Shown: piece after piece, positions 1 through 64,000 of the stretch | Numbering within the stretch: the first letter of the stretch is position 1 | How the letters are laid out: each line of letters opens with the position of its first letter | Origin: Paramoeba atlantica | Lineage: Eukaryota; Protista; Discosea | Length of the DNA: 64,000 bases | Assembly: GCA_977017575.1 (NCBI GenBank) | Contig: CDRNVI010000080.1 | Span: 1-64,000, forward strand | Direction: 5' to 3' | Translations under genes and position numbers: made by a program | Notes under the pieces: model-generated | What the model saw: the letters and a program-made list of their open reading frames with translations, nothing else | Databases searched by the model: none | What the model was told of the DNA's origin: nothing

Positions 1-2470
1 CTCTTTCTTCCTCTTTCTTCCTCTTTCTTCCTCTTTCTTCCTCTTTCTTCCTCTTTCTTCCTCTTTCTTCCTCTTTCTTCCTCTTTCTTCCTCTTTCTTC
101 CTCTTTCTTCCTCTTTCTTCCTCTTTCTTCCTCTTTCTTCCTCTTTCTTCTCTTTCTTCCTCTTTCTTCCTCTTTCTTCCTCTTTCTTCCTCTTTCTTCC
201 TCTTTCTTCCTCTTTCTTCCTCTTTCTTCCTCTTTCTTCCTCTTTCTTCCTCTTTCTTCCTCTTTCTTCCTCTTTCTTCCTCTTTCTTCCTCTTTCTTCC
301 TCTTTCTTCCTCTTTCTTCCTCTTTCTTCCTCTTTCTTCCTCTTTCTTCCTCTTTCTTCCTCTTTCTTCCTCTTTCTTCCTCTTTCTTCCTCTTTCTTCC
401 TCTTTCTTCCTCTTTCTTCCTCTTTCTTCCTCTTTCTTCCTCTTTCTTCCTCTTTCTTCCTCTTTCTTCCTCTTTCTTCCTCTTTCTTCCTCTTTCTTCC
501 TCTTTCTTCCTCTTTCTTCCTCTTTCTTCCTCTTTCTTCCTCTTTCTTCCTCTTTCTTCCTCTTTCTTCCTCTTTCTTCCTCTTTCTTCCTCTTTCTTCC
601 TCTTTCTTCCTCTTTCTTCTCTTTCTTCCTCTTTCTTCCTCTTTCTTCCTCTTTCTTCCTCTTTCTTCCTCTTTCTTCCTCTTTCTTCCTCTTTCTTCCT
701 CTTTCTTCCTCTTTCTTCTCTTTCTTCCTCTTTCTTCCTCTTTCTTCCTCTTTCTTCCTCTTTCTTCCTCTTTCTTCCTCTTTCTTCTCTTTCTTCCTCT
801 TTCTTCCTCTTTCTTCCTCTTTCTTCCTCTTTCTTCCTCTTTCTTCCTCTTTCTTCCTCTTTCTTCCTCTTTCTTCCTCTTTCTTCCTCTTTCTTCCTCT
901 TTCTTCCTCTTTCTTCCTCTTTCTTCCTCTTTCTTCCTCTTTCTTCCTCTTTCTTCCTCTTTCTTCCTCTTTCTTCCTCTTTCTTCCTCTTTCTTCCTCT
1001 TTCTTCCTCTTTCTTCCTCTTTCTTCCTCTTTCTTCCTCTTTCTTCCTCTTTCTTCTCTTTCTTCCTCTTTCTTCCTCTTTCTTCCTCTTCTTCCTCTTT
1101 CTTCCTCTTTCTTCCTCTTTCTTCCTCTTTCTTCCTCTTTCTTCCTCTTTCTTCCTCTTTCTTCCTCTTTCTTCCTCTTTCTTCCTCTTTCTTCCTCTTT
1201 CTTCCTCTTTCTTCCTCTTTCTTCCTCTTTCTTCCTCTTTCTTCCTCTTTCTTCCTCTTTCTTCCTCTTTCTTCCTCTTTCTTCCTCTTTCTTCCTCTTT
1301 CTTCCTCTTTCTTCCTCTTTCTTCCTCTTTCTTCCTCTTTCTTCCTCTTTCCCTCTTTCTTCCTCTTTCTTCCTCTTTCTTCCTCTTTCTTCCTCTTTCT
1401 TCCTCTTTCTTCCTCTTTCTTCCTCTTTCTTCCTCTTTCTTCCTCTTTCTTCCTCTTCTTCCTCTTTCTTCCTCTTTCTTCCTCTTTTCTTCCTCTTTCT
1501 TCCTCTTTCTTCCTCTTTCTTCCTCTTTCTTCCTCTTTCTTCCTCTTTCTTCCTCTTTCTTCCTCTTTCTTCCTCTTTCTTCCTCTTTCTTCCTCTTTCT
1601 TCCTCTTTCTTCCTCTTTCTTCCTCTTTCTTCCTCTTTCTTCCTCTTTCTTCCTCTTTCTTCCTCTTTCTTCCTCTTTCTTCCTCTTTCTTCCTCTTTCT
1701 TCCTCTTTCTTCCTCTTTCTTCCTCTTTCTTCCTCTTTCTTCCTCTTTCTTCCTCTTTCTTCCTCTTTCTTCCTCTTTCTTCCTCTTTCTTCCTCTTTCT
1801 TCCTCTTTCTTCCTCTTTCTTCCTCTTTCTTCCTCTTTTCTTCCTCTTTCTTCCTCTTTCTTCCTCTTTCTTCCTCTTTCTTCCTCTTTCTTCCTCTTTC
1901 TTCCTCTTTCTTCCTCTTTCTTCCTCTTTCTTCCTCTTTCTTCCTCTTTCTTCCTCTTTCTTCCTCTTTCTTCCTCTTTCTTCCTCTTTCTTCCTCTTTC
2001 TTCCTCTTTCTTCCTCTTTCTTCCTCTTTCTTCCTCTTTCTTCCTCTTTCTTCCTCTTTCTTCCTCTTTCTTCCTCTTTCTTCCTCTTTCTTCCTCTTTC
2101 TTCCTCTTTCTTCCTCTTTCTTCCTCTTTCTTCCTCTTTCTTCCTCTTTCTTCCTCTTTCTTCCTCTTTCTTCCTCTTTCTTCCTCTTTCTTCCTCTTTC
2201 TTCCTCTTTCTTCCTCTTTCTTCCTCTTTCTTCCTCTTTCTTCCTCTTTCTTCCTCTTTCTTCCTCTTTCTTCCTCTTTCTTCCTCTTTCTTCCTCTTTC
2301 TTCCTCTTTCTTCCTCTTTCTTCCTCTTTCTTCCTCTTTCTTCCTCTTTCTTCCTCTTTCTTCCTCTTTCTTCCTCTTTCTTCCTCTTTCTTCCTCTTTC
2401 TTCCTCTTTCTTCCTCTTTCTTCCTCTTTCTTCCTCTTTCTTCCTCTTTCTTCCTCTTTCTTCCTCTTTC
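1..2470 (-). repeat. Homogeneous 10-bp tandem array (CTCTTTCTTC)n; candidate non-canonical telomere, purine strand (GAAGAAAGAG)n pointing to the window start
   Basis: ~247 near-perfect units with occasional 1-nt indels. Runs to position 1 and has a sharp junction at 2470/2471. Array is certain; telomere role is inferred. Confidence 0.95.
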
Positions 2471-3410
2471 ATTCGTGTAGGCCCCTTCTATAACTACCAT
2501 TGTGTCCGGGCGAAAAGGATGAGCTTTGGTTGTTTTCGTCTTGTGCCCCCAGTACAGGATGATGCAGTCCGGTCGTGCCACTATGAAATCCCTTCGTTTC
2601 AAAAGCGCGACTTCCCCCGCACGAGATGCGGTTTTGTAGGCAATCAGTACTGTAGCTGCCATTTCTGACGTCATAAATGGTAGCAACTTGTTCAGTTGTG
2701 CCTTGGTCAAAGGCTGGGCTTGTTGAAATGGAATTTGCGATCCGCGTCGAATTAGTGACTTTAGCAGAAGACGGGAATGCGTTGCTAGCTTCCCGGACTG
2801 TACCATCAATGCTATAAGGTGCTTCAGATACGTTTCTTTCGTTTGGAGTGACAAGGACATGTCGTTTATTAGTTTTACGACATCGTCGTCGAATAATTTG
2901 AGACGGCGGGAATGCAACATTCGTAGCAGGCGGGCACGCGTTAACCATGTTGTCTGACACCACATTGGAACTAATGCTTGTTGTGTCGTCCATTTTCTTA
3001 TGCCCATGACTTCCATTACAAATTGAACTTCCTCGCTGTAAGATCTTCTTTGGAATGCTGCTCTTGCTAGGGTGCGACGTTGCGGTAAAGAAACTAGCTT
3101 GCTTTTTTGACTTAATGAAATTGTCTTCAATTGTCCGTGAACCGGAGTTATCCTCTTTTCGCTCTGGAGTTTTATTGGTTGAGATGGATTTGTACTTATT
3201 TTGATCGTTTTTACCGAACGGGTGCGACGTTGCGGTAGAGAAACTAACTTGCTTTTTTGACTTAATGTAATTTGATGGTCGGAATGAAACTTGCTGGACT
3301 GTGATTGTTTTAAAACTTTTTTCATATTCTGGTTTTGATTTATTGTAGAAAGAACTTTTAAACCTATTTTTGACTGGCTTTTGCCACGGGGGCGGACTTC
3401 GGAGAGTCAA
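2469..3410 (-). pseudogene. Overlapping -1 frame ORF, probably the N-terminal extension of the lost RT/RNaseH ORF
   Basis: Same -1 phase relative to YR as the RT ORF of the element at 28.6-31.5 kb. Open from ~3590 to the repeat junction. No domain of its own recognised. Confidence 0.55.
2471..3325 (-). pseudogene. Tyrosine recombinase of a TATE/VIPER-like retroelement, truncated by the repeat array (missing from ORF track)
   Basis: Manual translation in the gag frame gives PMWCQTTWLTRARL...AYKTASRAGEVALLKRRDF...IILYWGHKTKTTKAHPFRP, matching PMWATATWATRERL...CWKAAARWTETADLRREQF...VIIYWGRGTKTTRLNPYRP of the YR at 30321-31505. First ATG at 3325. The frame runs without a stop into the purine repeat; the C-terminal HxxR and catalytic Tyr are lost. 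Confidence 0.9.
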
Positions 3411-4786
3411 CTTCGCGGGCCAGACCCCCTCCCGCGAAAACCCGCTCTTCCATAGCTTCCTGCTGTAGTGCTCAACGTGGCGCCGTATCCTCCACGAAAC
3501 GATCCTCGATAAGAAACATGTCCACCACGCCCTCGACCTCGTCCGCGCGAACCATAGGAAATGCTCTGACGTATCGTATTTCCCAATGTATCATCGCTGC
3601 GTTGAGTTTCGTAGCGAGTCCTTACGTACGTTGAATCAGCCCCACGAAGGACGCCTTGTGTTATACGCACTTTGTCAAGTAACTTTTGTCCTATGCTTGC
3701 TTGATGTGGATCCTCCAAGTCAATACCTCCCCGACGGAACGCATCGCGCATCCATTCTCGCAATAGGCTCCAATGAAAGGCCGAATCTTCCGTCATTATT
3801 GCTGGCAATTCTAGGTCGATACGAATACGATGCTCTAGTAAATCGACACTGTGCTGATCGACCGATCGGAGGTACTCATTCCACGTCCGAACATCGTGAA
3901 ACACAAACTTCCCAGGCACTTCTTCGCACGGTTCAAATTCTGATGCGTCCTCAATCTTCCCAGGCATTATTGGAATCTGGTTAACGACGTGAACTCTTGT
4001 GTAGGTGACACCATCCTTTGGGAAAGGAAAGTCCCCTTTTTCGTATTTAACAATCAAATTGGGATTTCCATCATCATCGTTACCCGCCTTTGGGTTGCCT
4101 CGCCATGTTATTGCGGTAAGTGGGCCGTTTTTCTCGAGGTACCAGGTTACTTCGATTTCAACCTCATTTTCTTCCAGTAGTGCTGTAATGCGTAAAACCT
4201 TCTCTTGCACTTCGTCCTCTGAAAGAGGTTGCGCGGACATCGCTGGGTTTCGGGTTATGTTTCTCACCGAAGTCTGAGAGGTGGGTACCGGAGTGGAACG
4301 GTCGTTCCCAGAAGCTAAAGGGCTGACGCGTAGGTTTTGAATAAGCGCCTCTAATCGTTCATCTGACTGTGTAGTACGGCGCTCCCAAAATGACTGCTGC
4401 TCCTGTTGGGCTTTCAGAAGTGTCTCAAGTTGTCTTGATAGTCCACCAAATACTTCCAGCATCTGGTTGGCAGATTGGACTCGCGGATCAACAGCACCAT
4501 TTTGTGCGCTTGCCGCAGTTTGCGAACTCGTTTCTTCTTCTACTACACGGCTAAAGGGGTTCGCGAGTCTCGGTACAGAACGGGATCGTTGACGCGTCGC
4601 TCTGCGCTTGTTCAGATTTGGATAAATTGGAATTGGCTCCTCTGTGTCCTCTTCAGGAGAAATAGCATGCTCTGGGCGTATTGCGGCTTGCGCAGCGGCC
4701 TGAGATCGAGTTGTCGGCATAAAACTTTTTCTTTTCAAATAGCGGAAATATTCTAACACGTACAACAATAATGATAATAATGCCAT
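3407..4786 (-). CDS. Gag-like ORF1 of YR retroelement (probable true start MPTTRSQ at 4720), RGG-rich C-terminus
   Basis: 459-aa ORF directly upstream of and in frame with YR. Has a coiled-coil-like segment and the W..W.G...V.Y...FP module also seen in the gag at 35256-36680. Confidence 0.75.
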   Translation of the reverse strand: MALLSLLLYVLEYFRYLKRKSFMPTTRSQAAAQAAIRPEHAISPEEDTEEPIPIYPNLNKRRATRQRSRSVPRLANPFSRVVEEETSSQTAASAQNGAVDPRVQSANQMLEVFGGLSRQLETLLKAQQEQQSFWERRTTQSDERLEALIQNLRVSPLASGNDRSTPVPTSQTSVRNITRNPAMSAQPLSEDEVQEKVLRITALLEENEVEIEVTWYLEKNGPLTAITWRGNPKAGNDDDGNPNLIVKYEKGDFPFPKDGVTYTRVHVVNQIPIMPGKIEDASEFEPCEEVPGKFVFHDVRTWNEYLRSVDQHSVDLLEHRIRIDLELPAIMTEDSAFHWSLLREWMRDAFRRGGIDLEDPHQASIGQKLLDKVRITQGVLRGADSTYVRTRYETQRSDDTLGNTIRQSISYGSRGRGRGRGGHVSYRGSFRGGYGATLSTTAGSYGRAGFRGRGSGPRS

Positions 4787-4824
4787 ATGTTTTCGATATA
4801 AGACGTAATCAAAATTACTTTCTC

Positions 4825-5130
4825 AAGTTTACAAAATTTAGGCGAGGGCTATTTACGTTTAATAACCTGGCCCTTCGGGGCACATAAATATATGAACTTA
4901 TGATATGGCCCTTCGGGGCACATGTATTATAAGTTTCTTCTTTCTCATATTCTTCAGTTTATGACTTTCAAACATCAACATATTTAGTAGACTTTATTTC
5001 CTTTTTGTAGCTGTACTACGAGTTTCGAGGCCCACCCACCAACACCCAGCCTCGGCTGCGGGGTGTGGGGGTCTGAGCCCCTTCACTTCGTACTACTAGT
5101 ATTTAATATTTACGTTATAGCACGCAAGGC
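4825..5130 (+). repeat. Diverged relative of the A-B terminal-repeat unit
   Basis: Shares AAATTTAG.CGAGGG, CTGGCCCTTCGGGGCACATA (twice) and GCCCACCCACC..C.CCCAGCC with the units at 11124-11558 and 13333-13751. Confidence 0.6.
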
Positions 5131-5502: not shown

Positions 5503-6937
5503 GATGATTCTTTTAGCAAAATGTGCCAATGTTCGTCAACAATACCTGATTCGTGTCCACCCGCCCGAAACAACAGAGAAAGCATCATCACAATTCGATC
5601 AAGCGGTTGAAAATGTGGTAGAGTCTTGGATTGGTCCACTCTCTCCCGATCAAATGAAAATTGTACGATTACCCGTTAAGAAGGGATGAATGGGTTTGAC
5701 AGCGAGCAGTCCCCTTAGGGAGACGGCATATGTGGCATCCCGCTACTCGGTTCTTGAGCGCCGAAACTCTTTTTCAGCTCGGATCGACAACGCGGTGCCA
5801 TCACACCCGTCTATTCCTAAGAACTCGACAATGAAAGTCATACCAGTGGACGAAAAAGCTTCCACCAGCATTCATCATGTCGAAGTATTGAAAGAGTTGC
5901 AAACGGATCCCGACATTAAGCCCATTCTACAAGCCACATCCTTCAAAGGAAACAGCGACTGGATCCTTTCCAACGCGAAGTACATCCCTTCCCATCTCTT
6001 CAAACTCGCGATTATGCCACGACTAAATGCCCAACACCCAGATCTACCTACCAGTCTATTGTGTCCAGGGTGCGGTATTCTCCTCAATAACCGAAACGCC
6101 CTCACCCATATCCCAGGCTGTGCTCAATGTTCAGGTATAAATACGACCGTGAAACATAACTCACTTGTCGGATTTTTACATCGTCTATGCGTGAAAGCAG
6201 GCATCCCATGTGAAACGGAACCTAGAAACTTTTCTACGTGGAAGTGCATCGCTTGCCGATCTACAATCAGTCCGGAAAACCAGTTGGTACATCAGAAGAC
6301 TTGTGCAGGAAAAAAACTTTATCGTTCTGGCCCCGATCTCGTGATCTATTGGAACACGGGTGCGGTCTTCTATGATCTGACAGTTATTCACGAACTCTCA
6401 ATGTCTAATCGTGGAAAGAAATGCACACAGCTCATGAATGACGCGCTGCAGCGAAAGTCCAACACATATGTACGTACGAACTTAATTCGTGAAGACTCAT
6501 TTCAATGTTTACCCGTACTGGCAGGAGGCGCTTTGCACCGCAATACGCAGAACTTGGTACACTCGCTAGCAGACGCGGCCATGCTAAACAGGAAACAGGT
6601 CGAACTCGAAATGAAGCTGACGATTCAGGAGCTTAATGGATTAGGGATTTATGCGCAGCTAAAGAAATACTTAGACGGCTGCACGCAAACTCAAGAATAT
6701 AGTATATAAGTTCTAAACACAATATCACTATAAGCTGAGTCAGCTTATAAAATTATATAGATTTCATTTTCGGGATAGTTTCTCTTTGAAAATTGAGAGA
6801 AGGGGGGAAGGTGAACATGTCTCATAAAGATTTCACACTTGTGGAAGTTTATTCTTCTAAAGCCTGCAGTCAGGATAGATTTTTCAGAACTATTTGGAAG
6901 TGTGATTATACCAAAAAAAAAAAAAAAAAAAAAAAAA
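5503..6937 (+). pseudogene. 3' part of a family-B CRE-like RLE non-LTR element with in-frame stop and poly(A) tail
   Basis: 5504-5689 and 5690-6709 are one frame broken by TGA (KKG*MGL vs KMGGLG in the 6793 ORF). Shows CPGC..H..GC..C knuckle, KHN, EP, GPD..YD RLE motifs. A-tract at 6913-6937. Confidence 0.85.
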
Positions 6938-9532
6938 GTACGAAGTCAACAAAGCGGAGGCGAGGGCCGTTCGTCGTACGAAATGGATGTCCCCAAAAAA
7001 AAAAAAAACGCAAAAACGAAGAATTTCCGAAGGCTCCAGATCACATCAACACCATTATCCATGAATGGGGCAAAGGAACGACGTGCGAACTGAGATGGGG
7101 ATTCAAAAAAGAGCAGAAATATGCCTCAAAAGGAGTAGTGGTGAAGAGGACTGTCCGAAAAGGTATTGTAAAGCTGAAGGTGGAATACAAGCCAAGCGAC
7201 GGAGACAATGGACCCTCTGGTTTTATCTACCTTCCTCCATCTGCAAAAGTGAAAATTTGGTCCATTAAGGCACTGTGTCTAAATAAAGTAAAAAGCGTCG
7301 ATGTGTCAATGGAAAACACTGGAAATTCAGAGAACAAGGAGGAGCGAGGCATTGAGGGAACATCTGATTTGGAACCGCTGCCAAAGATGGCACAAATTGA
7401 TCCAACGTTTGCCGTCCATGTAATCGCGATTTTTCGTTCCATTATTAAAGCGTACCCGAAGGCTCAGACAGAAGCAGAAAGAACTGTTATCTGGCACAAA
7501 CTCCTCGATACACCACGGGACTCTTTGGCCACAATCCGTCTAAACTACCTACGGCGCCAGAGCTCCGTACAGCGTCGAGGGAGACGTGAGTGGGAAACTA
7601 TCGATACGAACATTACCGAGGAAGAACGACTTGTACAAGAAGTAGACAAACGATCAATTCGAAATGCATTGCAAGCAGCAAAGGAAGGAAATCTTGGAAA
7701 AGCTACCCGCATACTCGACAATGTTTACAAGGACTCTGCTCTTCCACTCTGGGAAAAGGTTGACAAACTTCGAGATCTACACCCCAAAGGCCCTACACCT
7801 CAAACTTCTGATCGAGACTTCCCGCGAATTGCGATATTGGAACCTTCTGAACTTCGTCTAGCGACTGAAAAATTGTCAAAAGGTGCAGCTCCTGGCCCGA
7901 CAGGTCTGAGTGAAAGCATGATGCGAATTTTAGTGGAGGACGAAGAATCCTGCCTTTCACTCTGCCACATGCTGAGAGACGTCATAAATGGGGAAGTTGC
8001 GAAAAGTGTCCGAGTAAGATTAACACGATGCAGAATGATAGCCCTTGCAAAACCGAACAATGGAATACGACCGGTTGCAATGGGGGAAACGCTGCTAAAA
8101 ATTTGCGGTTGTATCCTCCTTGAGCGCCATGCGAACTCCTTGTCAGACATATTCCAACCGATCCAAAGAGGCATATTACAAAAGAATGCATGTGAGTCCA
8201 TTGTACATGAACTTTTGGAAGAGCATGAAGCTGGAGCCACAATTTTGACGATTGACTTCAAGAATGCATACAATACGCCACAACGTACGGCAATAGAAGA
8301 AGCGCTCCTTCAATACCCAGTATTCAAACACTTTATGCGAATGTTCTATTTTGAATATGGTCAACCATCGGAACTTTTATTTTTCGCCAACGACTCATTA
8401 CATTCCGTGATCGAAAGCTCGTCTGGGGTCCGTCAAGGATCAGCACTCTCTTCGGTTTATTTTTGCGCACTGCTACAAGGTCCTTTGAAAGAAATTGCGA
8501 AGCTCTATCCAGAGGTTACTATCAGAGCCTACCAGGACGATGTGACGATGAGCTCCAAAAATGAGTCGTCTTTGGAAGTTGCGTTCCTTCACCTCAAAGA
8601 ACTAGCAAGTGGTCTGAATCTTGAAATTAATTCCCGTAAATGCGAAGTATTCCAAGGCAACAGTTCAACGAATAATCGAGGGATGGATCTCAAGGAACTT
8701 GGGGTGGAAGACTGTGTGGATTCCATCAAGGTCCTAGGAGCATACATCGGGCATAATAAAGCCGTTGAACGAAAGCTCTTGGAGAAGTTAGGGAAACATA
8801 AATGTTTATTTCGAAGACTTCGCGCTATGGGTCCCAGCAACTTGTCACTAGCGATTCTCAAGCGATGTACCATACCCCGTCATGATTACCACCTTCGAGT
8901 CCACAAACCTGGAGCTTCGTTTCTTCTTGCCCAGGTGTTCGACGAGGAAATCCATGAGATCTTAAAGAAATGGTGTGGTGCAGATAGTGAAGCACTTAAA
9001 CTCTCTGCCCTCCCATGTAAAATGGGAGGTCTAGGAATCACCTCAACCGTTCTAAAGCAACGCTACTTTTTCGAAGCGTCCCTAAAATCTATTGATGAGC
9101 GATCGAAACCCATTAATGCTCCGGTAGATAAGGGAGGCAAGAAACAAGCCGACAGCACACGAACGAATTCACAAGCTGCACGCACCCAGCTAAGAAAGAG
9201 CATGAAGAATGAACACGAGAAGACAGCAGCAGAATTGAATGCAATACCGAGATTCCAAAATATCATAAAGCGAACGAAGGAGGCGAACAATCACTTAGAT
9301 TCAACGTGCAACTACGTAAATCCATATCTTTTTCGTTACACTCTAATGATGCGCCTAGGAATTGCTCTAACTAATGTGTCAGGCGAGATTACATGCCCTG
9401 GATGTGGAACAATCGAAACATCAAGCAAAATCATTCCTCACGTAGCGGGATGTTCACGATGTGCTGGCATGAATTGCACGAGAAAACATTCTCATTTGGT
9501 ACGCTATATTGCCGAAATGTGTTCCAAAGCTG

Positions 9533-10849
9533 GGCTAGGGGGGACCTTCGATGAGTACTCATCGTAAGTTGTAGACTTTCGATGAGTCTCACGGAAAGTT
9601 GTAGACTTTCGATGAGTACTCATCGAAGGTGTTTTTGACTTTTTCAATTTTTCGTATTTTATCAATTTTTTGCGAAGGGCCAACTGTGAGCGTAGCCCTG
9701 GGACATAATAATATTTTTTGGCGACCCGTGCGCTCCATGCGGAGGTGGTGGATATTGGCACGGCGGGCGGAGGAGGAGTTGGCATCACGGCCTTCTTTTT
9801 CCGGCGGGCAGGAGGGAGCGGCAAAATCTCAGGACTACTCCTGATTCTTTTGCTTGGGAGCGTGTGAAAACTCCCATGAAAGGTAAAAAAAAGTAAATAA
9901 TCAACAAGGTACAGAAACTGTATCTTTATCGTTAAAGATTATTGTACGTGTGCTTCTCTCTAGATTCGTGGGAAGCAATTTGCGAAGCTCAACTACCTTG
10001 ATAACAAATTTTAGTACCCATTTTGGCCGCGCGGGGGCCCCCGCGTGAGCGGGGGTGCGCGCGGCCGCGAAACGGCGAGGGCCCGCGTGAGCGGGCCTGA
10101 GCCGTACCCCGCGTAGGATTCCCCTGTGCGTCGTTAGTGGGAAGCAATTTGCGAAGCTCACTGAATTTCGTAGTTTTCGCTACTGCGGCGTTGGCAACGT
10201 ATGTAGCGAAGTGTAGGATACTGAACGCACGGAAAAGGAAAATCAAAAAAAAATCTTGGGTGTTCCACAAAAGTCCTTGACTTCCACCGTAAATTTCCGT
10301 TCGTTGAGAACTCAACGAACGTACCCCCAACCCGTCTACCCCTTCCGCAGGATTGTCCTGAGGCAAGGCCCAACTGTGAGCGTATCCCTGTTGTTTTTTG
10401 TAAGACGGATTCTTCAGCTATTTTGCCGGTTTTAACGTAGGTATCATGTTTCCGTTACGTTGATGGCCATCAGACTATGAGTAGATCATATGTTTTCTTT
10501 TTGTAAATTATGCAGTCTGACTTAGCTTCTATTATCGATTAGGAGTTCGGATTCTCTTTTGACCATGGGACATAATAATATCTTTTGGCGCCCCGCGCGC
10601 TCCAGCACGCGGGTAGCGCACTGGGAACCTGTGTCTACCCCTTCCGAAGGATTGTGAATTTGTTTTATACAAACGCTTCAGTTTGTTTGCCACAAACGCT
10701 TCGGTGAGTAATAAAAAAACCTCGAAAATCTCTATTAGGGTCGCTCAAAAACGCTTCGATGAGTACTCATCGAAAGTTGTAGACTCTCGATGAGACTCAC
10801 GGAAAGTTGTAGACTTTCGATGAGTACTCATCGAAGGTCCCCCCTACCC
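9533..10849. mobile_element. Non-autonomous TIR DNA transposon with 8-bp TSD CAAAGCTG (hAT/Merlin/P-type TSD length)
   Basis: TSD at 9525-9532 and 10850-10857. Ends read GGCTAGGGGGGACCTTCGATGAGTACTCATCG and (rc) GGGTAGGGGGGACCTTCGATGAGTACTCATCG. No transposase inside. Confidence 0.85.
9902..9937 (-). other. SL-like 36-mer heading a short gag-like 5' fragment (MGVFTRSQA..., 9738-9901)
   Basis: CTTTAACGATAAAGATACAGTTTCTGTACCTTGTTG, followed by a U-rich UTR and ATG; no GT donor follows. Confidence 0.8.
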
Positions 10850-12045: not shown

Positions 12046-12864
12046 CGTCCATAATGGACGCGAGCAGTCTTGGCAGAGTCGCTTTGTTAATATAATGAAG
12101 TGTATAAAAGACAACTACGGTTTTCCCGTTCCCGAAGAATTTGAGGAACTTTTGCTTCAATTACTTTCACAAGTTCTCATTATCGTATGATGATGATGTA
12201 TATTTATACGAAGATTTTTTTTTTGGGGGGTGTGCACCCCCCTAGGCCCACCGGAAGCCTACCCACTTTTCATATGGATTTTCATCATATAAAAATCCAT
12301 TTCTAAAGAAAATACCTTTCTTTCTTAAGCAAAAAGGAAATTTGTCCATTTAATAGCCCTCAGAGTTTAGTGTCCTGTATCTGTGCCCATGTTGTCGTTG
12401 TTGGGTCTTGTATTTGTGCCCATGTTGAATAATACGAGATAGACTTGACTTTGGAGACTAGAAGATTATTTGGCTTCAAAGGCTTATGCCACCTAGCCAT
12501 TTTTCACCCTGTATGTGGTTCCGCAATTGCGATACGATAGTGTAAGCCGCAAACTTTTCATTTTCCAATTGAAAAGCTTCAGTCGTCACTTTTTCGCTGC
12601 TTTCAGCATTCGGCTATTACTGTTTTGCTTTTTTGAGTAACATGTGAATAAATAAAGGAACGGAAAACACGTGAAACTATTATTTTGAGTATACAGCAAC
12701 ATTGTATACTGCCATTGTATACTACAACAAGACGTTAAAGTCGTAAAAAAAAAGGGATGCTTGTCGGGCGTGGTACTGTCGTCTGGCGGCTCTACATTTT
12801 CGGGAGTAACGTTCAAGGATATAGGCAAAGAACCGATGCAACAGTACGTTTTTAATGGAATAGA

Positions 12865-13332
12865 ATCGCCTCGATTGAAGTCGTGAAGTCGCAAAACTTT
12901 GATATGCCTTTTTCTGAAAACCGAAAGCTGAGACCACGCGCAGCACGCAGCGGTGCGCCAAATAAGATTTATGCACTCGTGAGTGCGCGCTCCGAATGTT
13001 GATGGATTTGCGTTGCGCGATCCGAGACAACGCACACGCGAATCGCCGCGATTGAAGTCGTGAAGTCACAAAATTTTGATATGCCTTTTTCTGAGAACCG
13101 AAAGCTGAGACCACGCGCAGCACGCAGCGGTGCGCCAAAGTGGATTTATGCACTATTGAGTGCGCGCTCCGAATGTTGATGGATTTGCGTTGCGTGATCC
13201 GAGGCACCGCACACGCAAATCGCCGCGATTGAAGTCATGAAGTCGCAAAACTTTGATATGCCTTTTTCTGAGAACCGAAAGCTGAGACCACGCGCAGCAC
13301 GCAGCGGTGCGCCAAATAAGATTTATGCACTC
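12865..13332. repeat. 177-bp satellite, ~2.6 units
   Basis: Same unit as the arrays from 37533 onward; cut at GATTTATGCACTC|. Confidence 0.95.
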
Positions 13333-14961: not shown

Positions 14962-17900
14962 TCACTCACGAAGGCGAGGCGTGAGAATAGGCACTGTAGG
15001 CTCGATCGCTCCTGCCGGTCCGCAGCTGGCACGATTTGGTGTGGTGTCAGAGGGTGCCTCGTGCAGTAAAGCGAGACTGGCATGGATATCCACGTCTGCC
15101 ATGCGTCTTACAAGCATTCGTGCCTGAGACCGCATGAGCGTAACGTTCATATCCTGGAGAAGAAAAAACATTGACGCTTGCTCGGACATATCACCCTTAC
15201 ATGCTGCGGCTCTTTTTCCCGCGATCTTCTTCAGCATATGGAGGGACGTCGGACTCCATGATCCGTACGATTCCACTACCATGGCGGTGAAATCATGTCC
15301 GGCCTCTATAGCCTCTTGCCTTTGTCCACGCTTGTGGTTCGTTGCATATTTCTCTGCGAAGGCCCCTGCAGCTACCATGCCAGCAGAACGGACCAGGTCC
15401 GTATATTTCTGTTGCTGGACGTGGGTCACCGCAAAATCAAAGACAAGGCCTTTACCGAGCGTGTAGCTCGGAAGGAACACATCCCCTGGTCTTGTGAGTG
15501 CTCCCCCTGGACCTCTATTGCCGAGGCTGTGCTCCCTTTTCGGAGACAAATTGGCCTTTTGACAAACGTCAAAGAACTGGAGGGCCAAGGCATTATGCCT
15601 CGCAGAGATCCCGTAGTCGTGTTTACAGACCAATGCGTGGTCTCCTTGTGGTCCCATCGGAAGCGTGCAGCCTGAGACGGGACAGGGGTTTGTTTCTGGA
15701 TATACTTTTTGTCCTAGCCACCAGGTGCACAGGGTGCGGAACTCCGTTTTAGTAAAGGCGTGCCCCTTTTCCCTGGAGGGCGTGACAAACAGCCAGTCAC
15801 CTGCCCCTTTTCCAGATTGAGATATCCAACGTGCCCTCGTTTGAGGATCAGCTTTCTGATATGCATCAGTGTACTCGCGGGAAGAAATTGCACGGCTGAG
15901 CACCTTTTGGCGTGCGACTCGGTCGTTGGAAGATGAAAACTCGTGGTCGAGTTTCGTTTGTTCAAAGTAAGGGGTCGTCGTGTCTCCGGGTGGTGCTATG
16001 GGAAGATTCGCTGGGAGAGGTCGTTTTGATCCACGGAGACCCAGTACTTTTTTGAGGTGAGAGAGAGAGGAAGCGTGCTGAGGGGAAATTAGACCGGTTT
16101 TCTCTTCCAGGACGCTGGTGCCCGCTCGTGAATTGACGTCCAGTACTGCATCAGCAAAATCTTTTGCGTCGAGGGAGTTCCAGTTGTCCTTATCCGCTGC
16201 GAAAGAGACTGAGGAAACGTACGCCGATGAGGCGTGCATCGCTGAAGAGCGCAGCCCGAATCCACCGTAAGATTTTGGACGTTGTACTTGTGCGGCAGCA
16301 TCTTCATTTAAAGGACATATAGAGCGTTCCGTGGTGTGTAGTATTGCTGTGTCAAGTTCTTCGCATAGCTCATGGACGGAATTGGTGGGTGTGGTTCTAA
16401 GAGAATATGCCATTTGGCTGAAACCAGCACATTGTCGGATGAGTGCGAGGGAAACTTGCGGGTCTTCCATGTATTCGATCGCGGCTAGGGATTCTTCAGC
16501 AGGCAACAGGGTGTGTTCACGGAGAAATTCTGTGCAGAAACCAGTCGTTCCTACAGGGCTACCTAAAATTGAAAAATTTCCCTCGCTTGTCTTTTTAGTC
16601 GTCGGGATGTTGCCGAAGCTGTCCAGGTGTTCGGCGGATTCAGGATGTGTGATCGCCTCGCACTTGTTGGTGTTTAGGAAGATGCCCCACTGTGGGCCGA
16701 CTCGTTCGATGATGTCTAAGGCTCGTCTGACGTCTTGAGCCTTCCCCCCGAGAATGCCGTCATCCAAATACCACAGATTAAGCTTAAGAAGACCAGGAAG
16801 TTGTCGATCTATCTCGGTAGTAACCAGTTGCATGACGAGGGAAAAAAGTAAAGGACCCAACGGATCCCCTTGTTGCACACCCTCCTTTGAAGAAATCTGA
16901 CGGAAACCGTAAGTGAGAATACTCTCGGTGGTGTAACACCATTCAACCCACGGGGAGAGCTCCGGGAAGTGCTCCCTCGTAAGTGCAGCAAAGGCAGTTC
17001 TTGAGATGTTGTTAAAGGCATTTCGCAGATCCACTTTACATAGCGTGAAATCAGAACTTCCCGCCTGAGAGGCCATCACGTGCCTACACAGTTGGATCAG
17101 GCGTTCGGCCCCTGCAGGTGTTGCGACTCCGTATTGATGAGGCCAGAGTAGTTTGCTTGCCTTTTCCTTTACTGCGGAGCAGGCCGCTTTGCTCACAAGT
17201 CGCCTTATTGTTTCGCCGGCAGCAATAGGACGGACATCATTTTCTCCTTTTTCTAAGGCACATAGTCTGGCGCCGCCGAAGAACTTCTGGACTTGGAGAC
17301 AACCTTTCCCGGACAGCAAGAGGTTCATGACTTCCTTGAGATAGAAAAGCGGCTGTACCTTGTCATCAGGGTGTGCTGCTAAGGCGCTCTGGAGATGCTC
17401 AGGGCGGAGGCCCATGGTGCCAGCCGATGTTCCGCGCCGGAAACTGCGTAGTGCCTTTTCAACTTCGCCTTCGGATAGATGTAAAGGCTCTCCTTCTATG
17501 GGTCGGAATGTGACGGAAGATGATAAAGGCAATCTACCTGGGTGCTTCGATTGGAGTTTTTCGTAAGTTTCTTCGGATTCAGGTGCCATCGGTGCTGCTG
17601 TAAGAGCTGCCATCGCACGGGAAAACTCCCCTTGTCTGGCCAGCAACTCGGCTCGTTTCGCCGCCTTGCCGGACTCGTCCACTTCCTCATCGTCGTTCCT
17701 CTCCCGCTTCTTTACCATTTGCGCAACAGATTCGTTCCACAGTGCCGCGTATTCCCTGGATTCCCAGCGATCCATGCGTTGGCTCGTTTTCGTGGTATAG
17801 GACGAATTTCCTTTTCGTCCCCCTCTTTTGGGCGCGGGCAGGACACATTTTGGGAGCATCGCTAAGCGTGTCCAGGCCTCAACAGAATTCTCTCTAACCA

Positions 17901-18801
17901 CTGCAGCCATTGTTTGGGTCAAAACGGAGGCCCACTGTTGTCTGCATCGGAATGGTACATCTTTGCATGTGTTGATGGCGTAAGAGCAGACACAATCAAG
18001 AGACGGGAGCGAATCCTTGTAAATTTGGGAAATGGAAGCCTCTTCGGTTTCTGGCTCACAGGATAGCGACGAGGTGTAAGAGCCCAAGGAGTCTTGACAT
18101 TTTTCCTCATGGGAAGCTTTTTTATTGTGATCATAGTGCTTGCCGCATGAGGGGCATAAGAAACGTCCTTCTTTTTCCCACCATTCCGAAGGCACAGTAT
18201 CGCTATGTTGGCTTGCGACGTGATGGTAGTAGGCCTGCCACTTCCCTCCGTGTGATGCGGTGCTCCAGTTGCACACTTCGACTGGACAGGTGCGACGTCT
18301 CATTGTATCTCGTCTAGCTGGTTGGCGAGTCTTGGAATCTTTACTAACCCCTCTCTCGAAAATTTTGGGCGTCGACTTTTGGCTAGAAAGAGGGCTTTTT
18401 CGTGGGAGAAGCCTCGCTGTGGCCATGGAATGTGCTTCGTACCGCTCTGGGGTTTGGCTTGTTACTTCTTGACCTTTGCCAGACGTATTGGGGGCACAGT
18501 CTCTTGATACGCTGGAATGATTTCTCTCTTCGTCTGCCGATAAAATCATCCCCGTGTCAGGTGTCTGCTTCTCTCGGTGCAAAGATTGTAGTGCCGTTTC
18601 CATTTTGTCTTGCCAGGCCGGTGTAATATTTTCTGGTATGGGCGTCGTGTAGAGGGATTCATCGTATGTACTAGTTGCAGCGATAAGATGCTGATTACCC
18701 TCAAACTGGTCCCAGGAGCCTGGCGTGTGTGTTTTCTCCTCTTGGGCAAAAAGGTCATCTTCTCGTATCGTCGTCGAGCCGTATGAATCAGCCTCCCTCA
18801 T
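14962..18801 (-). CDS. LsmAD-like / 2 Zn fingers / RT / CCHC / restriction-like endonuclease polyprotein
   Basis: CPVEVC..H..H and CPSC..H..C fingers; RPIAAGE, DLRNAFN, QQGDPLGP, WYLDDG; CPVSGC..DHALVC, RHN, RPGDV..FD..K. ATG at 18801 (the track starts at TTG 18843). Confidence 0.95.
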   Translation of the reverse strand: MREADSYGSTTIREDDLFAQEEKTHTPGSWDQFEGNQHLIAATSTYDESLYTTPIPENITPAWQDKMETALQSLHREKQTPDTGMILSADEERNHSSVSRDCAPNTSGKGQEVTSQTPERYEAHSMATARLLPRKSPLSSQKSTPKIFERGVSKDSKTRQPARRDTMRRRTCPVEVCNWSTASHGGKWQAYYHHVASQHSDTVPSEWWEKEGRFLCPSCGKHYDHNKKASHEEKCQDSLGSYTSSLSCEPETEEASISQIYKDSLPSLDCVCSYAINTCKDVPFRCRQQWASVLTQTMAAVVRENSVEAWTRLAMLPKCVLPAPKRGGRKGNSSYTTKTSQRMDRWESREYAALWNESVAQMVKKRERNDDEEVDESGKAAKRAELLARQGEFSRAMAALTAAPMAPESEETYEKLQSKHPGRLPLSSSVTFRPIEGEPLHLSEGEVEKALRSFRRGTSAGTMGLRPEHLQSALAAHPDDKVQPLFYLKEVMNLLLSGKGCLQVQKFFGGARLCALEKGENDVRPIAAGETIRRLVSKAACSAVKEKASKLLWPHQYGVATPAGAERLIQLCRHVMASQAGSSDFTLCKVDLRNAFNNISRTAFAALTREHFPELSPWVEWCYTTESILTYGFRQISSKEGVQQGDPLGPLLFSLVMQLVTTEIDRQLPGLLKLNLWYLDDGILGGKAQDVRRALDIIERVGPQWGIFLNTNKCEAITHPESAEHLDSFGNIPTTKKTSEGNFSILGSPVGTTGFCTEFLREHTLLPAEESLAAIEYMEDPQVSLALIRQCAGFSQMAYSLRTTPTNSVHELCEELDTAILHTTERSICPLNEDAAAQVQRPKSYGGFGLRSSAMHASSAYVSSVSFAADKDNWNSLDAKDFADAVLDVNSRAGTSVLEEKTGLISPQHASSLSHLKKVLGLRGSKRPLPANLPIAPPGDTTTPYFEQTKLDHEFSSSNDRVARQKVLSRAISSREYTDAYQKADPQTRARWISQSGKGAGDWLFVTPSREKGHAFTKTEFRTLCTWWLGQKVYPETNPCPVSGCTLPMGPQGDHALVCKHDYGISARHNALALQFFDVCQKANLSPKREHSLGNRGPGGALTRPGDVFLPSYTLGKGLVFDFAVTHVQQQKYTDLVRSAGMVAAGAFAEKYATNHKRGQRQEAIEAGHDFTAMVVESYGSWSPTSLHMLKKIAGKRAAACKGDMSEQASMFFLLQDMNVTLMRSQARMLVRRMADVDIHASLALLHEAPSDTTPNRASCGPAGAIEPTVPILTPRLRE

Positions 18802-18837
18802 TGTCCGGATAAAAGAAATAGGGAAAGAAAAATAATT

Positions 18838-18871
18838 CAACAAGGTACAGAAACTGTATCTTTATCGTTAA
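18838..18871 (-). other. SL-like sequence (5'-trimmed) at the 5' end of A1
   Basis: TTAACGATAAAGATACAGTTTCTGTACCTTGTTG followed by AATTATTTTT...ATG. Confidence 0.8.
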
Positions 18872-19437: not shown

Positions 19438-21349
19438 TTTTTTTTTTTTTTTTGCAATTAATAAGGGGGGAGAAGTATGAATCGCGGCATTGCCTCTATA
19501 TTTTGACCCAGTAGACGAACCAAGTAGGTCCATTGGGGGGGGTATACGAGTTGAAAATAAGCAATCAATCAAATTAGCAAATCTTTTTGTTTCCACAGAT
19601 GTACCTTTTGTTTTTTCTCTCAGCCCAAAACTAGCAATTTAATCTCCCCTAAGTATATACTACAAACAAGAAACAGTAAAAACTAAAACAAGCAATACAG
19701 ACCCAATCCATTCGCGCGTCCCGGACCGGGTCTTTCGACCTCACCAGGGCCTGACTTGTGAACCCTTCCCTTGTTATATGGGAGGGCGCAGGCGCGGGCC
19801 TGTGTCGACAGCGACACGGTCGCGAAACAGGATGCTGGTCGACGGGGAGGAGATTCACTACCCGTGTACTACCTCACTTGGGGTACCTAGCCCTCGCGGG
19901 CTAGGCGTGAGCATAGACTCTGTCGACCCGACAAGCATCCCGACCAGATGTTCATGGGCGCAAACGACCAGTTCGGAATGAATCCAGCCGGTCGTCATGT
20001 GTGACGAGTTGGCCAGTGGGATCTTCATCCGGGAGACGTCGGACCAACATCCGTGCCTGTGAACGCATGAGGGCTATGTTCATACCCCTTATGAGTTGTG
20101 CTGTGGCCTGTGCATGGCTCAAAGTCCCATTAGAGGTTGAAGCTCGGTGTTTCCCGACGCTTTTTATGATGGTCAGGGCACTTTTGGACCAGGATCCAAA
20201 AGATTCTACAACCATCGCTTCAAAACGGTGACCAGCAGCGACAGCTTCTGCTCTCTCCGATATTTTATGTTCCGAGGCGTAGCGCTCGGCGAATGACCCC
20301 GCCTTTACCCATGTAGCAGTTCGGACTAAGTCCGTATATTTGTTTTGCTGGACATGTGTAACTGCGAAGTCAAGGACGAGAGCTGTGCCAAGGTCATAGT
20401 TTGGCAAGTAAACGTCACCTGGTCGTGTCAAGCCGCCTCCCGGACCATGATTTCCTAGCGTCTTTTCCCTCTGAGGAGCCAGCTGCGCCTTACTACACTC
20501 TTGCGCAAACTGTAGACAAAGAGAGTTATGTCGTGCCATGATGCCATGTCCAGATTTGCACACTAGAGCGTGGTCCCCATCGAGTCCGATAGACATTTTA
20601 CATTTTTCCATGGGACATGGTTGGACGCTGGGTACAAGTTGTGCTCCGAGCCACCACCTTACCAGTGCGCGGAATTCAGCTGGTGTGAAAGCAAAACCAA
20701 GGTCTTTGGATGGAGTGGAAAATGCCCAGTCCCCAGCTCCCTTGCCAGACTGTGAAATCCAGCGAGTTCGGGTCTTAATGTCTGCGTTGTAAAATGCTTG
20801 CCCGAATTCGTGTTCTGAAATAATGTGGCTTAACTGTTTTTGCCGTGGTACTGTGTATTTCTCCGAGGCATAGGTTCCTTCCGGTAAATCCGCCTCGATG
20901 TCGTTACTCGTTGGGCGATTATCTTGTTGGCTGTTGGTGATAGATCCTGTGGTCCGGTCAAGTACCGTGATGCCTAGTGCGTTGTTGAAGTCATGAACTG
21001 CATCTTCGAAACCTTCTGCTTCTTGCGGTTCCCAGGAGTCTTGCTTGGCGCCGAATGTCACTGAAGAAATATAAGCCCCGGAGGCATGTAGCTCGGATGA
21101 ACGAATGCCAAATCCCCCATGTTTCTTCAGTCGCTGTGCCTGGGACCTGGAAACATCATCCAAAGGACAGAAAATCCATTCGAGAGTTTTCATTGTTGCT
21201 GAGTCAAGGCGAGTGCATAAGTCCATGAGTTTACGAAAAGGTGTTGTACGCAGCGCATACGTCATTTGGCAAAATCCGGCACATTGACGAAGTAGCGAAA
21301 GGGCAACTTGCGGGTCTTCTAGGCTTTGTATTGCCAGGAGAGTGTCTAC
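19438..21349 (-). pseudogene. 3' half of family-A element A2 (RT thumb, RLE, 3' UTR, poly(A))
   Basis: ORF 19952-21265 is homologous to the A1 C-terminus and continues ...AVDT|LLAIQSLEDPQVAL from the half at 26047. Poly(A) at 19438-19453. Confidence 0.92.
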
Positions 21350-21380
21350 CTTGAGTGTCTACCTTGCCAGGAGAGTGTCT

Positions 21381-21700
21381 ATCTTTTTGTTAAGACCATC
21401 TTTTTGTTAAGACCATCTTTTTGTTAAGACCATCTTTTTGTTAAGACCATCTTTTTGTTAAGACCATCTTTTTGTTAAGACCATCTTTTTGTTAAGACCA
21501 TCTTTTTGTTAAGACCATCTTTTTGTTAAGACCATCTTTTTGTTAAGACCATCTTTTTGTTAAGACCATCTTTTTGTTAAGACCATCTTTTTGTTAAGAC
21601 CATCTTTTTGTTAAGACCATCTTTTTGTTAAGACCATCTTTTTGTTAAGACCATCTTTTTGTTAAGACCATCTTTTTGTTAAGACCATCTTTTTGTTAAG
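21381..21700 (+). repeat. 17-bp tandem repeat (TTTTTGTTAAGACCATC) x~19 immediately 5' of the LINE1 ATG
   Basis: Direct reading; 17-nt period. Confidence 0.95.
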
Positions 21701-21711
21701 ATTTTAACAAA

Positions 21712-25872: not shown

Positions 25873-26046
25873 ACTCAGGGGTGTACTCAAAACGAAAGTA
25901 ATGGAAAAATATATCTACCAATAGGGCGCACGATGGTGTGGGAATCAAATTCTATTAGTTCTAGTTTTAGGAGCATATATTTAGTGAAGCTTGAACAGTT
26001 TCTCAACTGAAGGGTAATGCCTTCAGTGTTGTGTGTGTGTGTGTGT

Positions 26047-43429: not shown

Positions 43430-44472
43430 ACAACAACAACAACAACAAATACACTGAGTCCTTTTTAGTGGACCAGTTAGGGGCTCTCGAGTAGGTACTT
43501 ATAGTGTCGATACATCTCGACTTCTTCGTATGACACACTGGACTTCACAAAGCAGAAAGAATATACAAAATAGTAAAACACTTAAACTTTTGTGTGTACC
43601 TGTTGTGTAACTTGTTGTGTGTACCTGTACCTTGTTGCTTGTTGTTGTTGATCTTTTCAGTCAATTTCCCCCATGCACCCCTTCACCCCTGGGGAAATTA
43701 AGTCCCCCTTCCGCCTCCCACTTCACCCCTAGCGCCGCCCCCTTCGCCGTCCCCTCCACCCTGCTCCGTCGCCCCCCCGCGACCTGTTTCGCCCCCCCTC
43801 TTGGGGAGGGAGCTTGAGCTACCCCATGCGCCGCCGCCGCCGCGCTCCCCGCCGCGCTCCCGCCGCGCCACCATTTCCGCCCCGTTTTCGCCGCCTTCTT
43901 TCGTCACCGCTTCGCCGGCCCTTTCTCCGTCCCCCCAGTCGCCATTCCCCTCCCCGGCCCATTGTGTGGAGCTACCCGGTGTCAGCAAAACAAGGCGCCA
44001 AGAAACTAGGGTAGTCTCCATATGCAAAAATTTAAATTGTGAAGGGCACTGGTCGAGCTCCACTGTGAGCCCCGCTGGTGAGAGAGCCTCGCAAGCTCCA
44101 CACACCCTAGCGTGAGTCATCCCTGGTGGTGGAACAGAATATAACGACTGTTCCACTACTTCTTTGCCCCAGGATGCGAATCCATCGGGCATTGAAGTCA
44201 CGGATGACAAGTCAGACCATGCAACCTGACAGGTATTGCTTGTCTATCTGCGAGTGCGGCATCCCACTGGGAAAGTCTGCGCGCGACTGACAGCGTACCA
44301 CCCACGGAGTACGGTAATACCCGGTGCCGTTTCACACGAGCACTAAATAACTAGGGTGTACTCTGAACCCATAGCCAGTCATGGCCAAACGGGTTAAACA
44401 ACAACAACAACAACAACTTAAACTTTTCAATAAATCCGACGTGGCGGAACGTACGTCGGGTTCATCAAAATA

Positions 44473-44649
44473 TGCTCAACCAGGATTAAATGCTCAACCA
44501 GGATCAAATGCTCAACCAGGATTAAATGCTCAACCAGGATCAAATGCTCAACCAGGATTAAATGCTCAACCAGGATTAAATACTCAACCAGGATCAAATG
44601 CTCAACCAGGATTAAATGCTCAACCAGGATCAAATGCTCAAGCCAGGAT
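44473..44649 (+). repeat. 18-bp minisatellite TGCTCAACCAGGAT(T/C)AAA x~9-10
   Basis: Translates as alternating [12 protein letters not shown]. Confidence 0.92.
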
Positions 44650-44727
44650 GAAAACCTCGACCAGGATTATATATGCTCAACCAGTAATAATTAGGATTCC
44701 GGAACAACAAAATTGTACACATGCAGG

Positions 44728-53500: not shown

Positions 53501-53881
53501 GCGTTGCGCGATCCGAGACAACGCACTCGCAAATCGCCGCGATTGAAGTCGTGAAGTCACAAAATTTTGATATGCCTTTTTCTGAAAACCGAAAGCTGAG
53601 ACCACGCGAAGCACGTAGCGGTGCGCCAAATAAGATTTATGCACTCGTGATTGCGCGCTCCGAATGTTGATGGATTTGCGTTGCGCGATCCGAGACAACG
53701 CACACGCGAATCGCCGCGATTGAAGTCATGAAGTCGCAAAACTTTGATATGCCTTTTTCTGAGAACCGAAAGCTGAGACCACGCGCAGCACGCAGCGGTC
53801 CGCCAAAGTGGATTTATGCACTCGTGAGTGTGCGCTCCGAATGTTGATGGATTTGCGTTGCGCGATCCGAGGCACCGCACA
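50506..53881. repeat. 177-bp satellite array, ~19 units
   Basis: Same unit; 354-bp dimer pattern. Confidence 0.97.
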
Positions 53882-63900: not shown

Positions 63901-64000
63901 AATAAGATTTATGCACTCGTGAGTGCGCGCTCGGAATGTTGATGGATTTGCGTTGCGCGATCCGAGACAACGCACTCGCAAATCGCCGCGATTGAAGTCG
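60956..64000. repeat. 177-bp satellite array running off the window
   Basis: Same unit. Confidence 0.97.

Follow-up and report, generated by a model that had tools for sequence, protein, structure and literature searches.

We identified a purine-only 10-base repeat, GAAGAAAGAG, that is probably the chromosome-end repeat of a Perkinsela-like relative of trypanosomes, in place of the usual TTAGGG. The 2.47-kb run that begins the analyzed sequence is one of at least 18 such runs in the assembly, all lying at or next to contig ends and all pointing outward. The window analyzed was 64,000 nucleotides long and corresponds to positions 1-64000 of a 126,724-bp contig, C80 (G000:C80; contigs of the assembly are numbered C1 upward). 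Position 1 of the window is thus a true contig end. The features relevant to the analysis were as follows:

1-2470, minus strand: terminal array of about 247 units of GAAGAAAGAG, the purine strand being the minus strand and running 5' to 3' toward the contig end at position 1.
2471-2472, no strand assigned: junction between the array and a broken element, reading on the minus strand ...CACGAAT followed directly by GAAAGAGGAAG...
2472-4834, minus strand: copy of a dispersed two-ORF repeat element, with an intact 5' end at 4834 and its 3' part missing.
5690-9567, plus strand: first RT-bearing retroelement of the subtelomeric retroelement zone (RVT_1, E = 4.6e-19).
12863-64000, no strand assigned: subtelomere-like zone with further RT elements and 177-bp satellite arrays.

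The array was first characterized by tandem repeat analysis and base composition. TRF reported 1-2470 as period 10, 247.7 copies, 99% matches, 0% indels and a score of 4859, with the unit CTCTTTCTTC. GC skew and AT skew were both −1.000 over 1-2000, and the minus strand of 1-2470 contained only G and A. Of 241 parsed units, 237 were GAAGAAAGAG and the remainder were one-base variants in the length of the A run. The zone behind the array was rich in retroelements, with RT-domain ORFs at 6793-9567, 14962-18843, 21712-25872, 26003-28444, 46840-50520 and 57290-60970, and 177-bp satellite arrays at 12863-13331, 37533-43429, 50506-53881 and 60956-64000. No TTAGGG array occurred in the window. These data confirmed what an earlier note had observed from the sequence alone, except that the array ends at 2470/2471 and not at 2480. 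The note's reading of the repeat as a candidate non-TTAGGG telomere was supported by the analyses described below, although the changed telomerase template that it proposed remains an inference and its triplex claim was only partly right.

We next performed a census of the repeat in the whole 45.7-Mb assembly. The note had named an interstitial or single-locus repeat, TTAGGG at other ends and a basecalling artefact as grounds for rejecting its reading, and none of these was found to apply. All 18 arrays longer than 130 bp (0.19-9.7 kb, on 17 contigs) lay at or next to contig ends with the purine strand running 5' to 3' outward. Seven were at left ends in the minus orientation (C13, C16, C29, C42, C43, C47 and C80), and eleven were at right ends in the plus orientation (C14, C25, C41, C43, C45, C46, C56, C60, C77, C92 and C105). 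Fourteen ran to the last bases of the contig. The other four were followed only by a fold-back of the array (C16, C43) or by bacterial DNA (C56, C77). C43, of 799,619 bp, carried an array at both ends. As C42-left and C77-right share one flank, 17 ends were considered independent, for which the chance of uniform polarity is 2^-17 = 7.6e-6. About 160-300 reverse-strand matches to the repeat were not covered by these arrays, so at least one more, unplaced array exists. Interior tracts were all 125 bp or shorter, like interstitial telomere tracts.

This census argues against an ordinary internal GA-rich satellite at which the assembler stopped, which we consider highly unlikely. Such a satellite would give equal numbers of inward-facing ends, and there were none. 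Only tracts of 125 bp or less were flanked by host DNA on both sides, and no long array had eukaryotic DNA on its 3' purine side. Moreover, some contigs stop inside arrays of only 190, 446 or 496 bp (C29, C92 and C13, respectively), which a long-read assembler would have read through if DNA continued. In favor of the satellite, a metagenome scan for four units of the repeat returned ten contigs carrying this very unit, but all were short (50-160 bp) interstitial GA-rich tracts in unrelated DNA without similarity to this genome, and no relatives were found in this way.

To evaluate competing terminal repeats, the assembly was searched for TTAGGG. No array of five or more units was found anywhere, and the only (TTAGGG)3-4 sits inside a TTTAGGG array on C205. 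The opposite ends of the array-bearing contigs were plain unique sequence or bacterial chimeras and not another repeat. In total, 18 of about 272 ends of contigs C1-C136 carried the 10-mer, and 17 other sampled ends of this set were unique sequence or bacterial chimeras, that is, assembly breaks, so the data do not show the repeat at all chromosome ends. A rare (TCCAGGGGGGG)n tract occurred at C46-left in the inward orientation. We also considered whether the 10-mer is a subterminal satellite of fixed orientation, with the real telomere, TTAGGG or other, lying beyond it and lost from the assembly. Contigs cannot show their true ends, and kinetoplastid telomeres carry base J, which can disturb some sequencing chemistries. 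Nevertheless, this explanation appears very unlikely given the absence of TTAGGG arrays from the 45.7 Mb and the arrays as short as 190-500 bp that still end contigs. Where contigs do continue beyond an array, they never continue into another repeat, and the junctions are unique and out of phase, unlike a conserved subtelomeric block.

The junctions were then compared. Their flanks were unrelated to each other, and the repeat started in eight different phases. C42-left and C77-right carried the identical junction on flanks that are 99.4% identical over 878 bp, so this junction is inherited and not a read chimera. In the window, the array takes the place of the 3' part of the two-ORF element, of which at least 10 copies at 99-100% identity occur on other contigs and for which neither ORF matched a Pfam family. 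The missing part is at least 1.5 kb and includes the last ~98 codons of ORF2. The possibility that the array is the natural tail of this element was rejected: other copies continue past the junction into shared sequence, and an apparent common start of the copies at query position 2 reflected where the query began. The unrelated flanks, varied phases and truncated element are the pattern expected for healing of broken ends, as in the de novo telomere addition of Plasmodium, yeast and ciliates, in which repeats are likewise joined directly to unrelated, truncated sequences in varying phase. Healing is inferred here from junction structure only, as no before/after pair for this end was found. 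Chromosome ends of the HeT-A/TART type, built of head-to-tail retrotransposons without a short repeat, did not fit: the terminus is a 10-nt repeat and the adjacent element is 3'-truncated, with its 5' end inward, and is not part of a terminal array of elements.

To test whether the repeat is a basecalling or assembly artefact of another repeat, for example a modified TTAGGG, we examined contigs from other sequencing runs. A 559-nt contig of run X4, which holds Illumina adapter sequence, spanned 2442-2972, bridging the junction exactly and including 30 nt of array without change. Exact repeat unitigs stood at depths of 4486 in run X1 and 14625 in run X2, against 13-270 for the flanking element. 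Strand-specific miscalling does occur in these tracts: at C16:1-824 and C43:1-1035, the strand read after a fold-back is called (GAAGAGGGAG)n, which differs systematically from the main unit at 2 of 10 positions. However, this variant occurred only at those two fold-backs, and an artefact is highly unlikely for the main unit.

Based on these data, we propose with fair confidence that (GAAGAAAGAG)n is the telomeric repeat of the kinetoplastid genome in this mixed assembly, forming the physical ends of chromosomes in tracts of about 0.2-10 kb, with the purine strand as the 3'-outward strand, and being added de novo onto broken ends, as in the window, where it would cap an element cut inside its second ORF. 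In this view, the most likely maker is a telomerase whose RNA template has changed to a permutation of CUCUUUCUUC. The terminal position of the arrays (at the level of contigs, not of molecules), their uniform polarity, the differing junctions, the reality of the sequence and the absence of TTAGGG rest directly on the data, whereas the enzyme, its template, a 3' overhang and the absence of further DNA beyond the arrays are inferred. A profile search for the TERT RNA-binding domain (PF12009, Telomerase_RBD) in a six-frame translation of the assembly returned no match, but it also missed the TERT of the TTTAGGG organism described below and is uninformative. A search of the window against Rfam at the gathering threshold recognized no SL RNA or telomerase RNA gene. 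In T. brucei, the telomerase RNA is SL-trans-spliced and has a C/D box domain.

The repeat has no T and no GGG, unlike almost all telomerase products. It is possible, though unlikely, that the arrays are true chromosome termini maintained without telomerase, by recombination or rolling-circle copying (ALT-like, as for the terminal satellites of some Diptera) or by a retroelement-type reverse transcriptase that copies a short template repeatedly. Consistent with this alternative, LINEs of this genome are headed by long perfect arrays of 17/18-bp units, as at 21381-21701 and 44472-44684 in the window, so a reiterating reverse transcriptase other than telomerase exists here. Array lengths also vary widely, and no TERT RNA-binding-domain match was found, although that search was insensitive. 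On the other hand, a 10-nt unit, strict 3'-outward polarity and addition in many phases onto unrelated unique sequences are typical of telomerase healing, and no element was regularly associated with the junctions.

The repeat was compared with known systems. It shares with the (TTAGGG)n telomeres of trypanosomatids, which are made by telomerase, a short tandem unit at chromosome ends, a G-containing strand that is 3' outward, kilobase-scale tracts and retroelement-rich subtelomeres, within the same class, Kinetoplastea. TTAGGG is treated as the ancestral type for excavates, with derived variants (PMC3622300). The present unit is 10 nt rather than 6 and lacks T and a GGG run on the outward strand. 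Purine-only outward strands occur in the cryptomonad nucleomorph ([AG]7AAG6A) and in Dictyostelium (A(G)1-8), and the nucleomorph is also the nucleus of a eukaryotic endosymbiont, as a Perkinsela-like organism would be. The 'odd telomeres' of the nucleomorph are cited in PMC3622300 as Zauner et al. 2000. Those repeats differ in unit and length and contain long G runs, where the present one has only GG doublets, and the lineages are unrelated. The long derived repeats of plants and insects, such as TTTTTTAGGG of Cestrum and CTCGGTTATGGG of Allium, are also 10-12-nt units that replaced an ancestral 6-7-nt unit through a change in the telomerase RNA template. However, they keep a T-rich part and a GGG block recognizably derived from TTAGGG/TTTAGGG, and GAAGAAAGAG has no evident derivation from TTAGGG.

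The earlier note had further suggested that the repeat favors triplex (H-DNA) over G-quadruplex, implying unusual end protection. The tract is indeed homopurine/homopyrimidine, with perfect strand asymmetry over 2.47 kb, but it is not a mirror repeat: the best match of the array to its own mirror image was 80%. An intramolecular triplex would therefore carry two mismatched triplets per unit, which weakens the suggestion.

Every characterized kinetoplastid telomere is TTAGGG, and much of trypanosome biology is tied to that repeat, including base J, TRF/RAP1 silencing of telomeric expression sites and a telomerase RNA with a CCCUAA template. We found no paper that mentions the present unit as a telomere: a literature search for 12 of its 20 spellings (all ten on the purine strand, two on the pyrimidine strand) returned only primers and unrelated motifs, and the Perkinsela genome paper and the Prokinetoplastina paper say nothing about telomere sequence. 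About as likely as not, a kinetoplastid, probably a Perkinsela-like endosymbiont of an amoeba, has replaced TTAGGG by a T-free, GGG-free 10-nt repeat made by a telomerase with a rewritten template. Its G-strand could then carry no base J, could not form a standard G-quadruplex and could not be read by TTAGGG-specific Myb/TRF proteins. This would imply a rebuilt end-protection system, evolved in parallel with the purine-only telomeres of cryptomonad nucleomorphs, and would provide a natural experiment on how far the telomere sequence and its binding proteins can drift. Extension of a GAAGAAAGAG primer should then need only dATP and dGTP.

Finally, we examined the origin of the contigs. The DNA is kinetoplastid: HSP90 genes were intronless and in tandem arrays, and a permease on C67 had its best named match in Perkinsela sp. 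CCAP 1560/4 at 54% identity. An SL-like TTTCTGTACTTTTG lies in the window at 32091 on the minus strand. A euglenid-type spliced leader, suggested by GAGTGTCTA at 21340-21380, was dropped in favor of this kinetoplastid-type sequence and the Perkinsela protein match. (TTTAGGG)n arrays occurred only on AT-rich contigs from C138 up, which share no repeats with the kinetoplastid contigs and are evidently a second eukaryote. As the proposed telomeric repeat, the 10-mer is a marker for complete chromosome ends of the kinetoplastid in this mixed assembly, and it separates those contigs from the TTTAGGG-ended ones. An apparent 10-mer tract on the TTTAGGG contig C138 (9004-9043) was a (GAAGAG)n tract caught by loose marking.

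Window 1-2470 was resolved by tandem-repeat analysis as an array of period 10, comprising 247.7 copies of the unit CTCTTTCTTC on the plus strand with 99% matches. The minus strand of this stretch contains only G and A: of 241 parsed units, 237 were GAAGAAAGAG and the remainder differed by one A in a run. GC skew and AT skew were both -1.000 over positions 1-2000. The window occupies positions 1-64000 of a 126,724-bp contig, C80, so position 1 is a real contig end. At a left end with the pyrimidine strand on top, the purine strand runs 5'->3' outward, as the earlier note had stated. Thus, the observation made in that note was confirmed, except that the array stops at 2470/2471 and not at 2480. 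The features of the window were as follows:

1-2470, purine strand on the minus strand: the 10-bp array.
2472-4834, minus strand: copy of a dispersed element with two ORFs.
21381-21701, 33636-33754, 44472-44684 and 54924-55136: arrays of 17-18-bp units, perfect or near-perfect (89-100% match); three lie beside LINE ORFs, directly upstream at 21381-21701.
32078-32091, minus strand: TTTCTGTACTTTTG, resembling the 3' end of kinetoplastid spliced leaders (SL).
37533-64000: 177-bp satellite alternating with an APE-RT-RNase H LINE (ORFs 46840-50520 and 57290-60970) in a higher-order tandem repeat of 10,452 bp; features at 43590 and 54042 repeat exactly.

We next examined the sequence behind the array. 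The element at 2472-4834 has ORFs of 459 aa and, in intact copies, 382 aa, and at least ten copies at 99-100% identity lie on other contigs. Its 5' boundary at 4834 is shared with these copies. The latter run on past window 2472 into sequence that they share among themselves, and ORF2 continues there for about 98 more codons. Thus, the copy in the window has lost its 3' part, and the array sits exactly at the break. As retrotransposition truncates 5' ends and not 3' ends, a terminal deletion capped by new repeats is the simplest reading. Further in, the window is full of RT-bearing elements and the 177-bp satellite.

To evaluate whether the repeat is confined to contig ends, we performed a census of the 45.7-Mb assembly, in which the 30-mer made of three units occurs 4111 times. 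Array boundaries were listed using patterns that required a pyrimidine within 9 nt of the array on either side, and the loci were then retrieved and placed relative to the ends of their contigs. Every array longer than 130 bp that was placed is at a contig end. Seven are at left ends in the minus orientation: C13 (496 bp), C16 (1426), C29 (190), C42 (2419), C43 (1443), C47 (3483) and C80 (2470). Eleven are at right ends in the plus orientation: C14 (9746 bp), C25 (2616), C41 (1560), C43 (5896), C45 (2652), C46 (1055), C56 (1697), C60 (1346), C77 (2466), C92 (446) and C105 (1157). The placed arrays account for all forward-strand matches of the 30-mer but leave roughly 160-300 reverse-strand matches unplaced. 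All 18 arrays have the purine strand pointing outward, and fourteen reach the last bases of the contig. C42-left and C77-right share a 99.4% identical flank and the identical junction, and are therefore one end assembled twice or two haplotypes. This leaves 17 independent ends, for which the chance of uniform polarity under random orientation is 2^-17 = 7.6e-6. An internal satellite that breaks assemblies should yield as many contigs that start with the array pointing inward; there are none. Moreover, C43, which is 799,619 bp long, has an array at both ends.

Interior tracts of the repeat are all 125 bp or shorter (C1, C4 x3, C11, C45, C48, C60, C65 x2 and C67). At C1:291543-291848 and C60:481194-481501, three units directly precede a 277-bp fragment of the same element family that is capped in the window. 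This is either an interstitial telomere tract at a 5'-truncated insertion or a relic of an old end, present twice, possibly as two haplotypes.

We then investigated what lies beyond the four arrays that do not reach the contig end. At C16:1-824 and C43:1-1035, distal to the main array, the contig switches to the opposite strand and continues as (GAAGAGGGAG)n, a unit that occurs nowhere else in the genome. The unit differs from the main unit at two positions, and the stretch is shorter than the array it follows. This is probably a fold-back read that ran from one strand of a DNA end onto the other, with strand-specific miscalls (A to G at two positions per unit). At C56:439511-448883 and C77:73844-76309, the array is followed by densely packed bacterial genes: malic enzyme, DtpA-type permease, ZIP and TatD on C56, and SusC/RagA on C77. 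Such joins are not specific to arrays, as C14-left (C14:1-2000; RsmB) and the right end of C29 (MetI plus NlpA) are bacterial too. They look like chimeric joins from co-sampled bacteria and should not be read as gene transfer. In no case is an array followed by eukaryotic DNA or by another telomere-like repeat.

The 17 flanks are unrelated to each other, apart from short shared repeat motifs more than 1 kb from the junctions, and the repeat begins in eight different phases. This is the pattern of de novo addition to many different broken ends rather than that of a conserved subtelomere/array boundary.

To test whether the repeat is a basecalling artefact, we used four public runs of one study that hold the region. 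One run, X4, shows Illumina adapter sequence among its loose ends and has a 559-nt contig that spans 2442-2972, covering the junction plus 30 nt of array with no change in the array part. In two further runs, X1 and X2, perfect-repeat unitigs stand at depths of 4486 and 14625, respectively, against 13-270 for the flanking multi-copy element. The main unit is therefore not a basecalling artefact.

The assembly was also searched for other telomere candidates. No (TTAGGG)5 was found, and the only (TTAGGG)3-4 lies inside a (CCCTAAA)n array at C205:1-~400. By contrast, (TTTAGGG)10 has 4320 matches, but the first contig that carries it is C138 (C138:1-815). The subtelomeric sequence of C138 matches only contigs C137-C225 and shares nothing with C1-C136, whereas the element in the window matches only contigs up to C92 at high identity. 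GC content is 29-35% on C205/C138 against 48% in the window. All HSP90-family genes lie on contigs up to C90, and no junction of the 10-mer lies above C105. Thus, the assembly holds two eukaryotes that share no repeats: an AT-rich organism with TTTAGGG contig ends (C137-C248) and the organism of this window. As no HSP90-family gene was found on C137-C248, the AT-rich genome seems only partly assembled. The opposite ends of the array-bearing contigs are plain sequence. A G/C-homopolymer-rich 12-13-bp repeat, (GTCCAGGGGGGGG)n, occurs at or near contig ends in both orientations (C46:1-65; C25:1-12 and 966-1009); at C46 its G-rich strand points inward, which argues against this repeat as another telomere candidate.

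The organism of this window looks like a kinetoplastid. Its cytosolic HSP90 genes are intronless and occur in tandem arrays with a 2,587-bp period on four contigs (C12, C48, C88 and C90). The two other HSP90-family paralogues, which gave weaker matches and which we read as GRP94- and TRAP1-like, each occur on two contigs (C44/C70; C23/C14), suggesting that haplotypes are assembled separately. An amino-acid permease on C67 has its best named match in Perkinsela sp. CCAP 1560/4 at 54% identity. Finally, the kinetoplastid-type spliced-leader end at window 32091 on the minus strand sits upstream of ORFs on that strand, consistent with SL-headed retroelement copies.

Trypanosomatid telomeres are TTAGGG, and TTAGGG is inferred as ancestral for excavates (PMC3622300). 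Purine-only telomeres occur in the cryptomonad nucleomorph and in Dictyostelium, and derived units of ten to twelve nucleotides occur in Cestrum and Allium. A literature search returned no paper naming the present unit as a telomere, and no statement on telomeres in the Perkinsela or Prokinetoplastina genome papers. The repeat would be the first non-TTAGGG telomere in Kinetoplastea of which we are aware.

Based on the census, the 10-mer is very probably the telomere, and the telomere interpretation of the earlier note is supported. The analysis itself demonstrates, at the level of contigs, that the repeat is terminal and polar, that it is inherited (the C42/C77 pair), that it is joined to unrelated broken sequences, and that it is abundant in independent runs. 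By inference, it would be synthesized onto 3' ends by a telomerase whose template is a permutation of CUCUUUCUUC; the template change and its consequences for end protection likewise remain inferences. We are highly confident that the arrays are chromosome termini, and consider the full statement, including telomerase-type addition, likely but less secure. A search of the assembly with the Pfam TERT RNA-binding-domain model found nothing, but it also found nothing for the TTTAGGG organism and recovered no control, so this says little. A telomerase-free route, either recombination or a reiterating retroelement RT, cannot be excluded: the LINEs of this genome carry long 17/18-bp head arrays.

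With respect to structure, the outward strand has only GG doublets, 10 nt apart, so standard G-quadruplexes are unlikely. The strand has no T, so base J could sit only on the pyrimidine strand. The earlier note had further proposed that the repeat favours H-DNA. The tract is indeed homopurine/homopyrimidine, but its best match to its own mirror image is 80%, and the proposal therefore holds only in weakened form.
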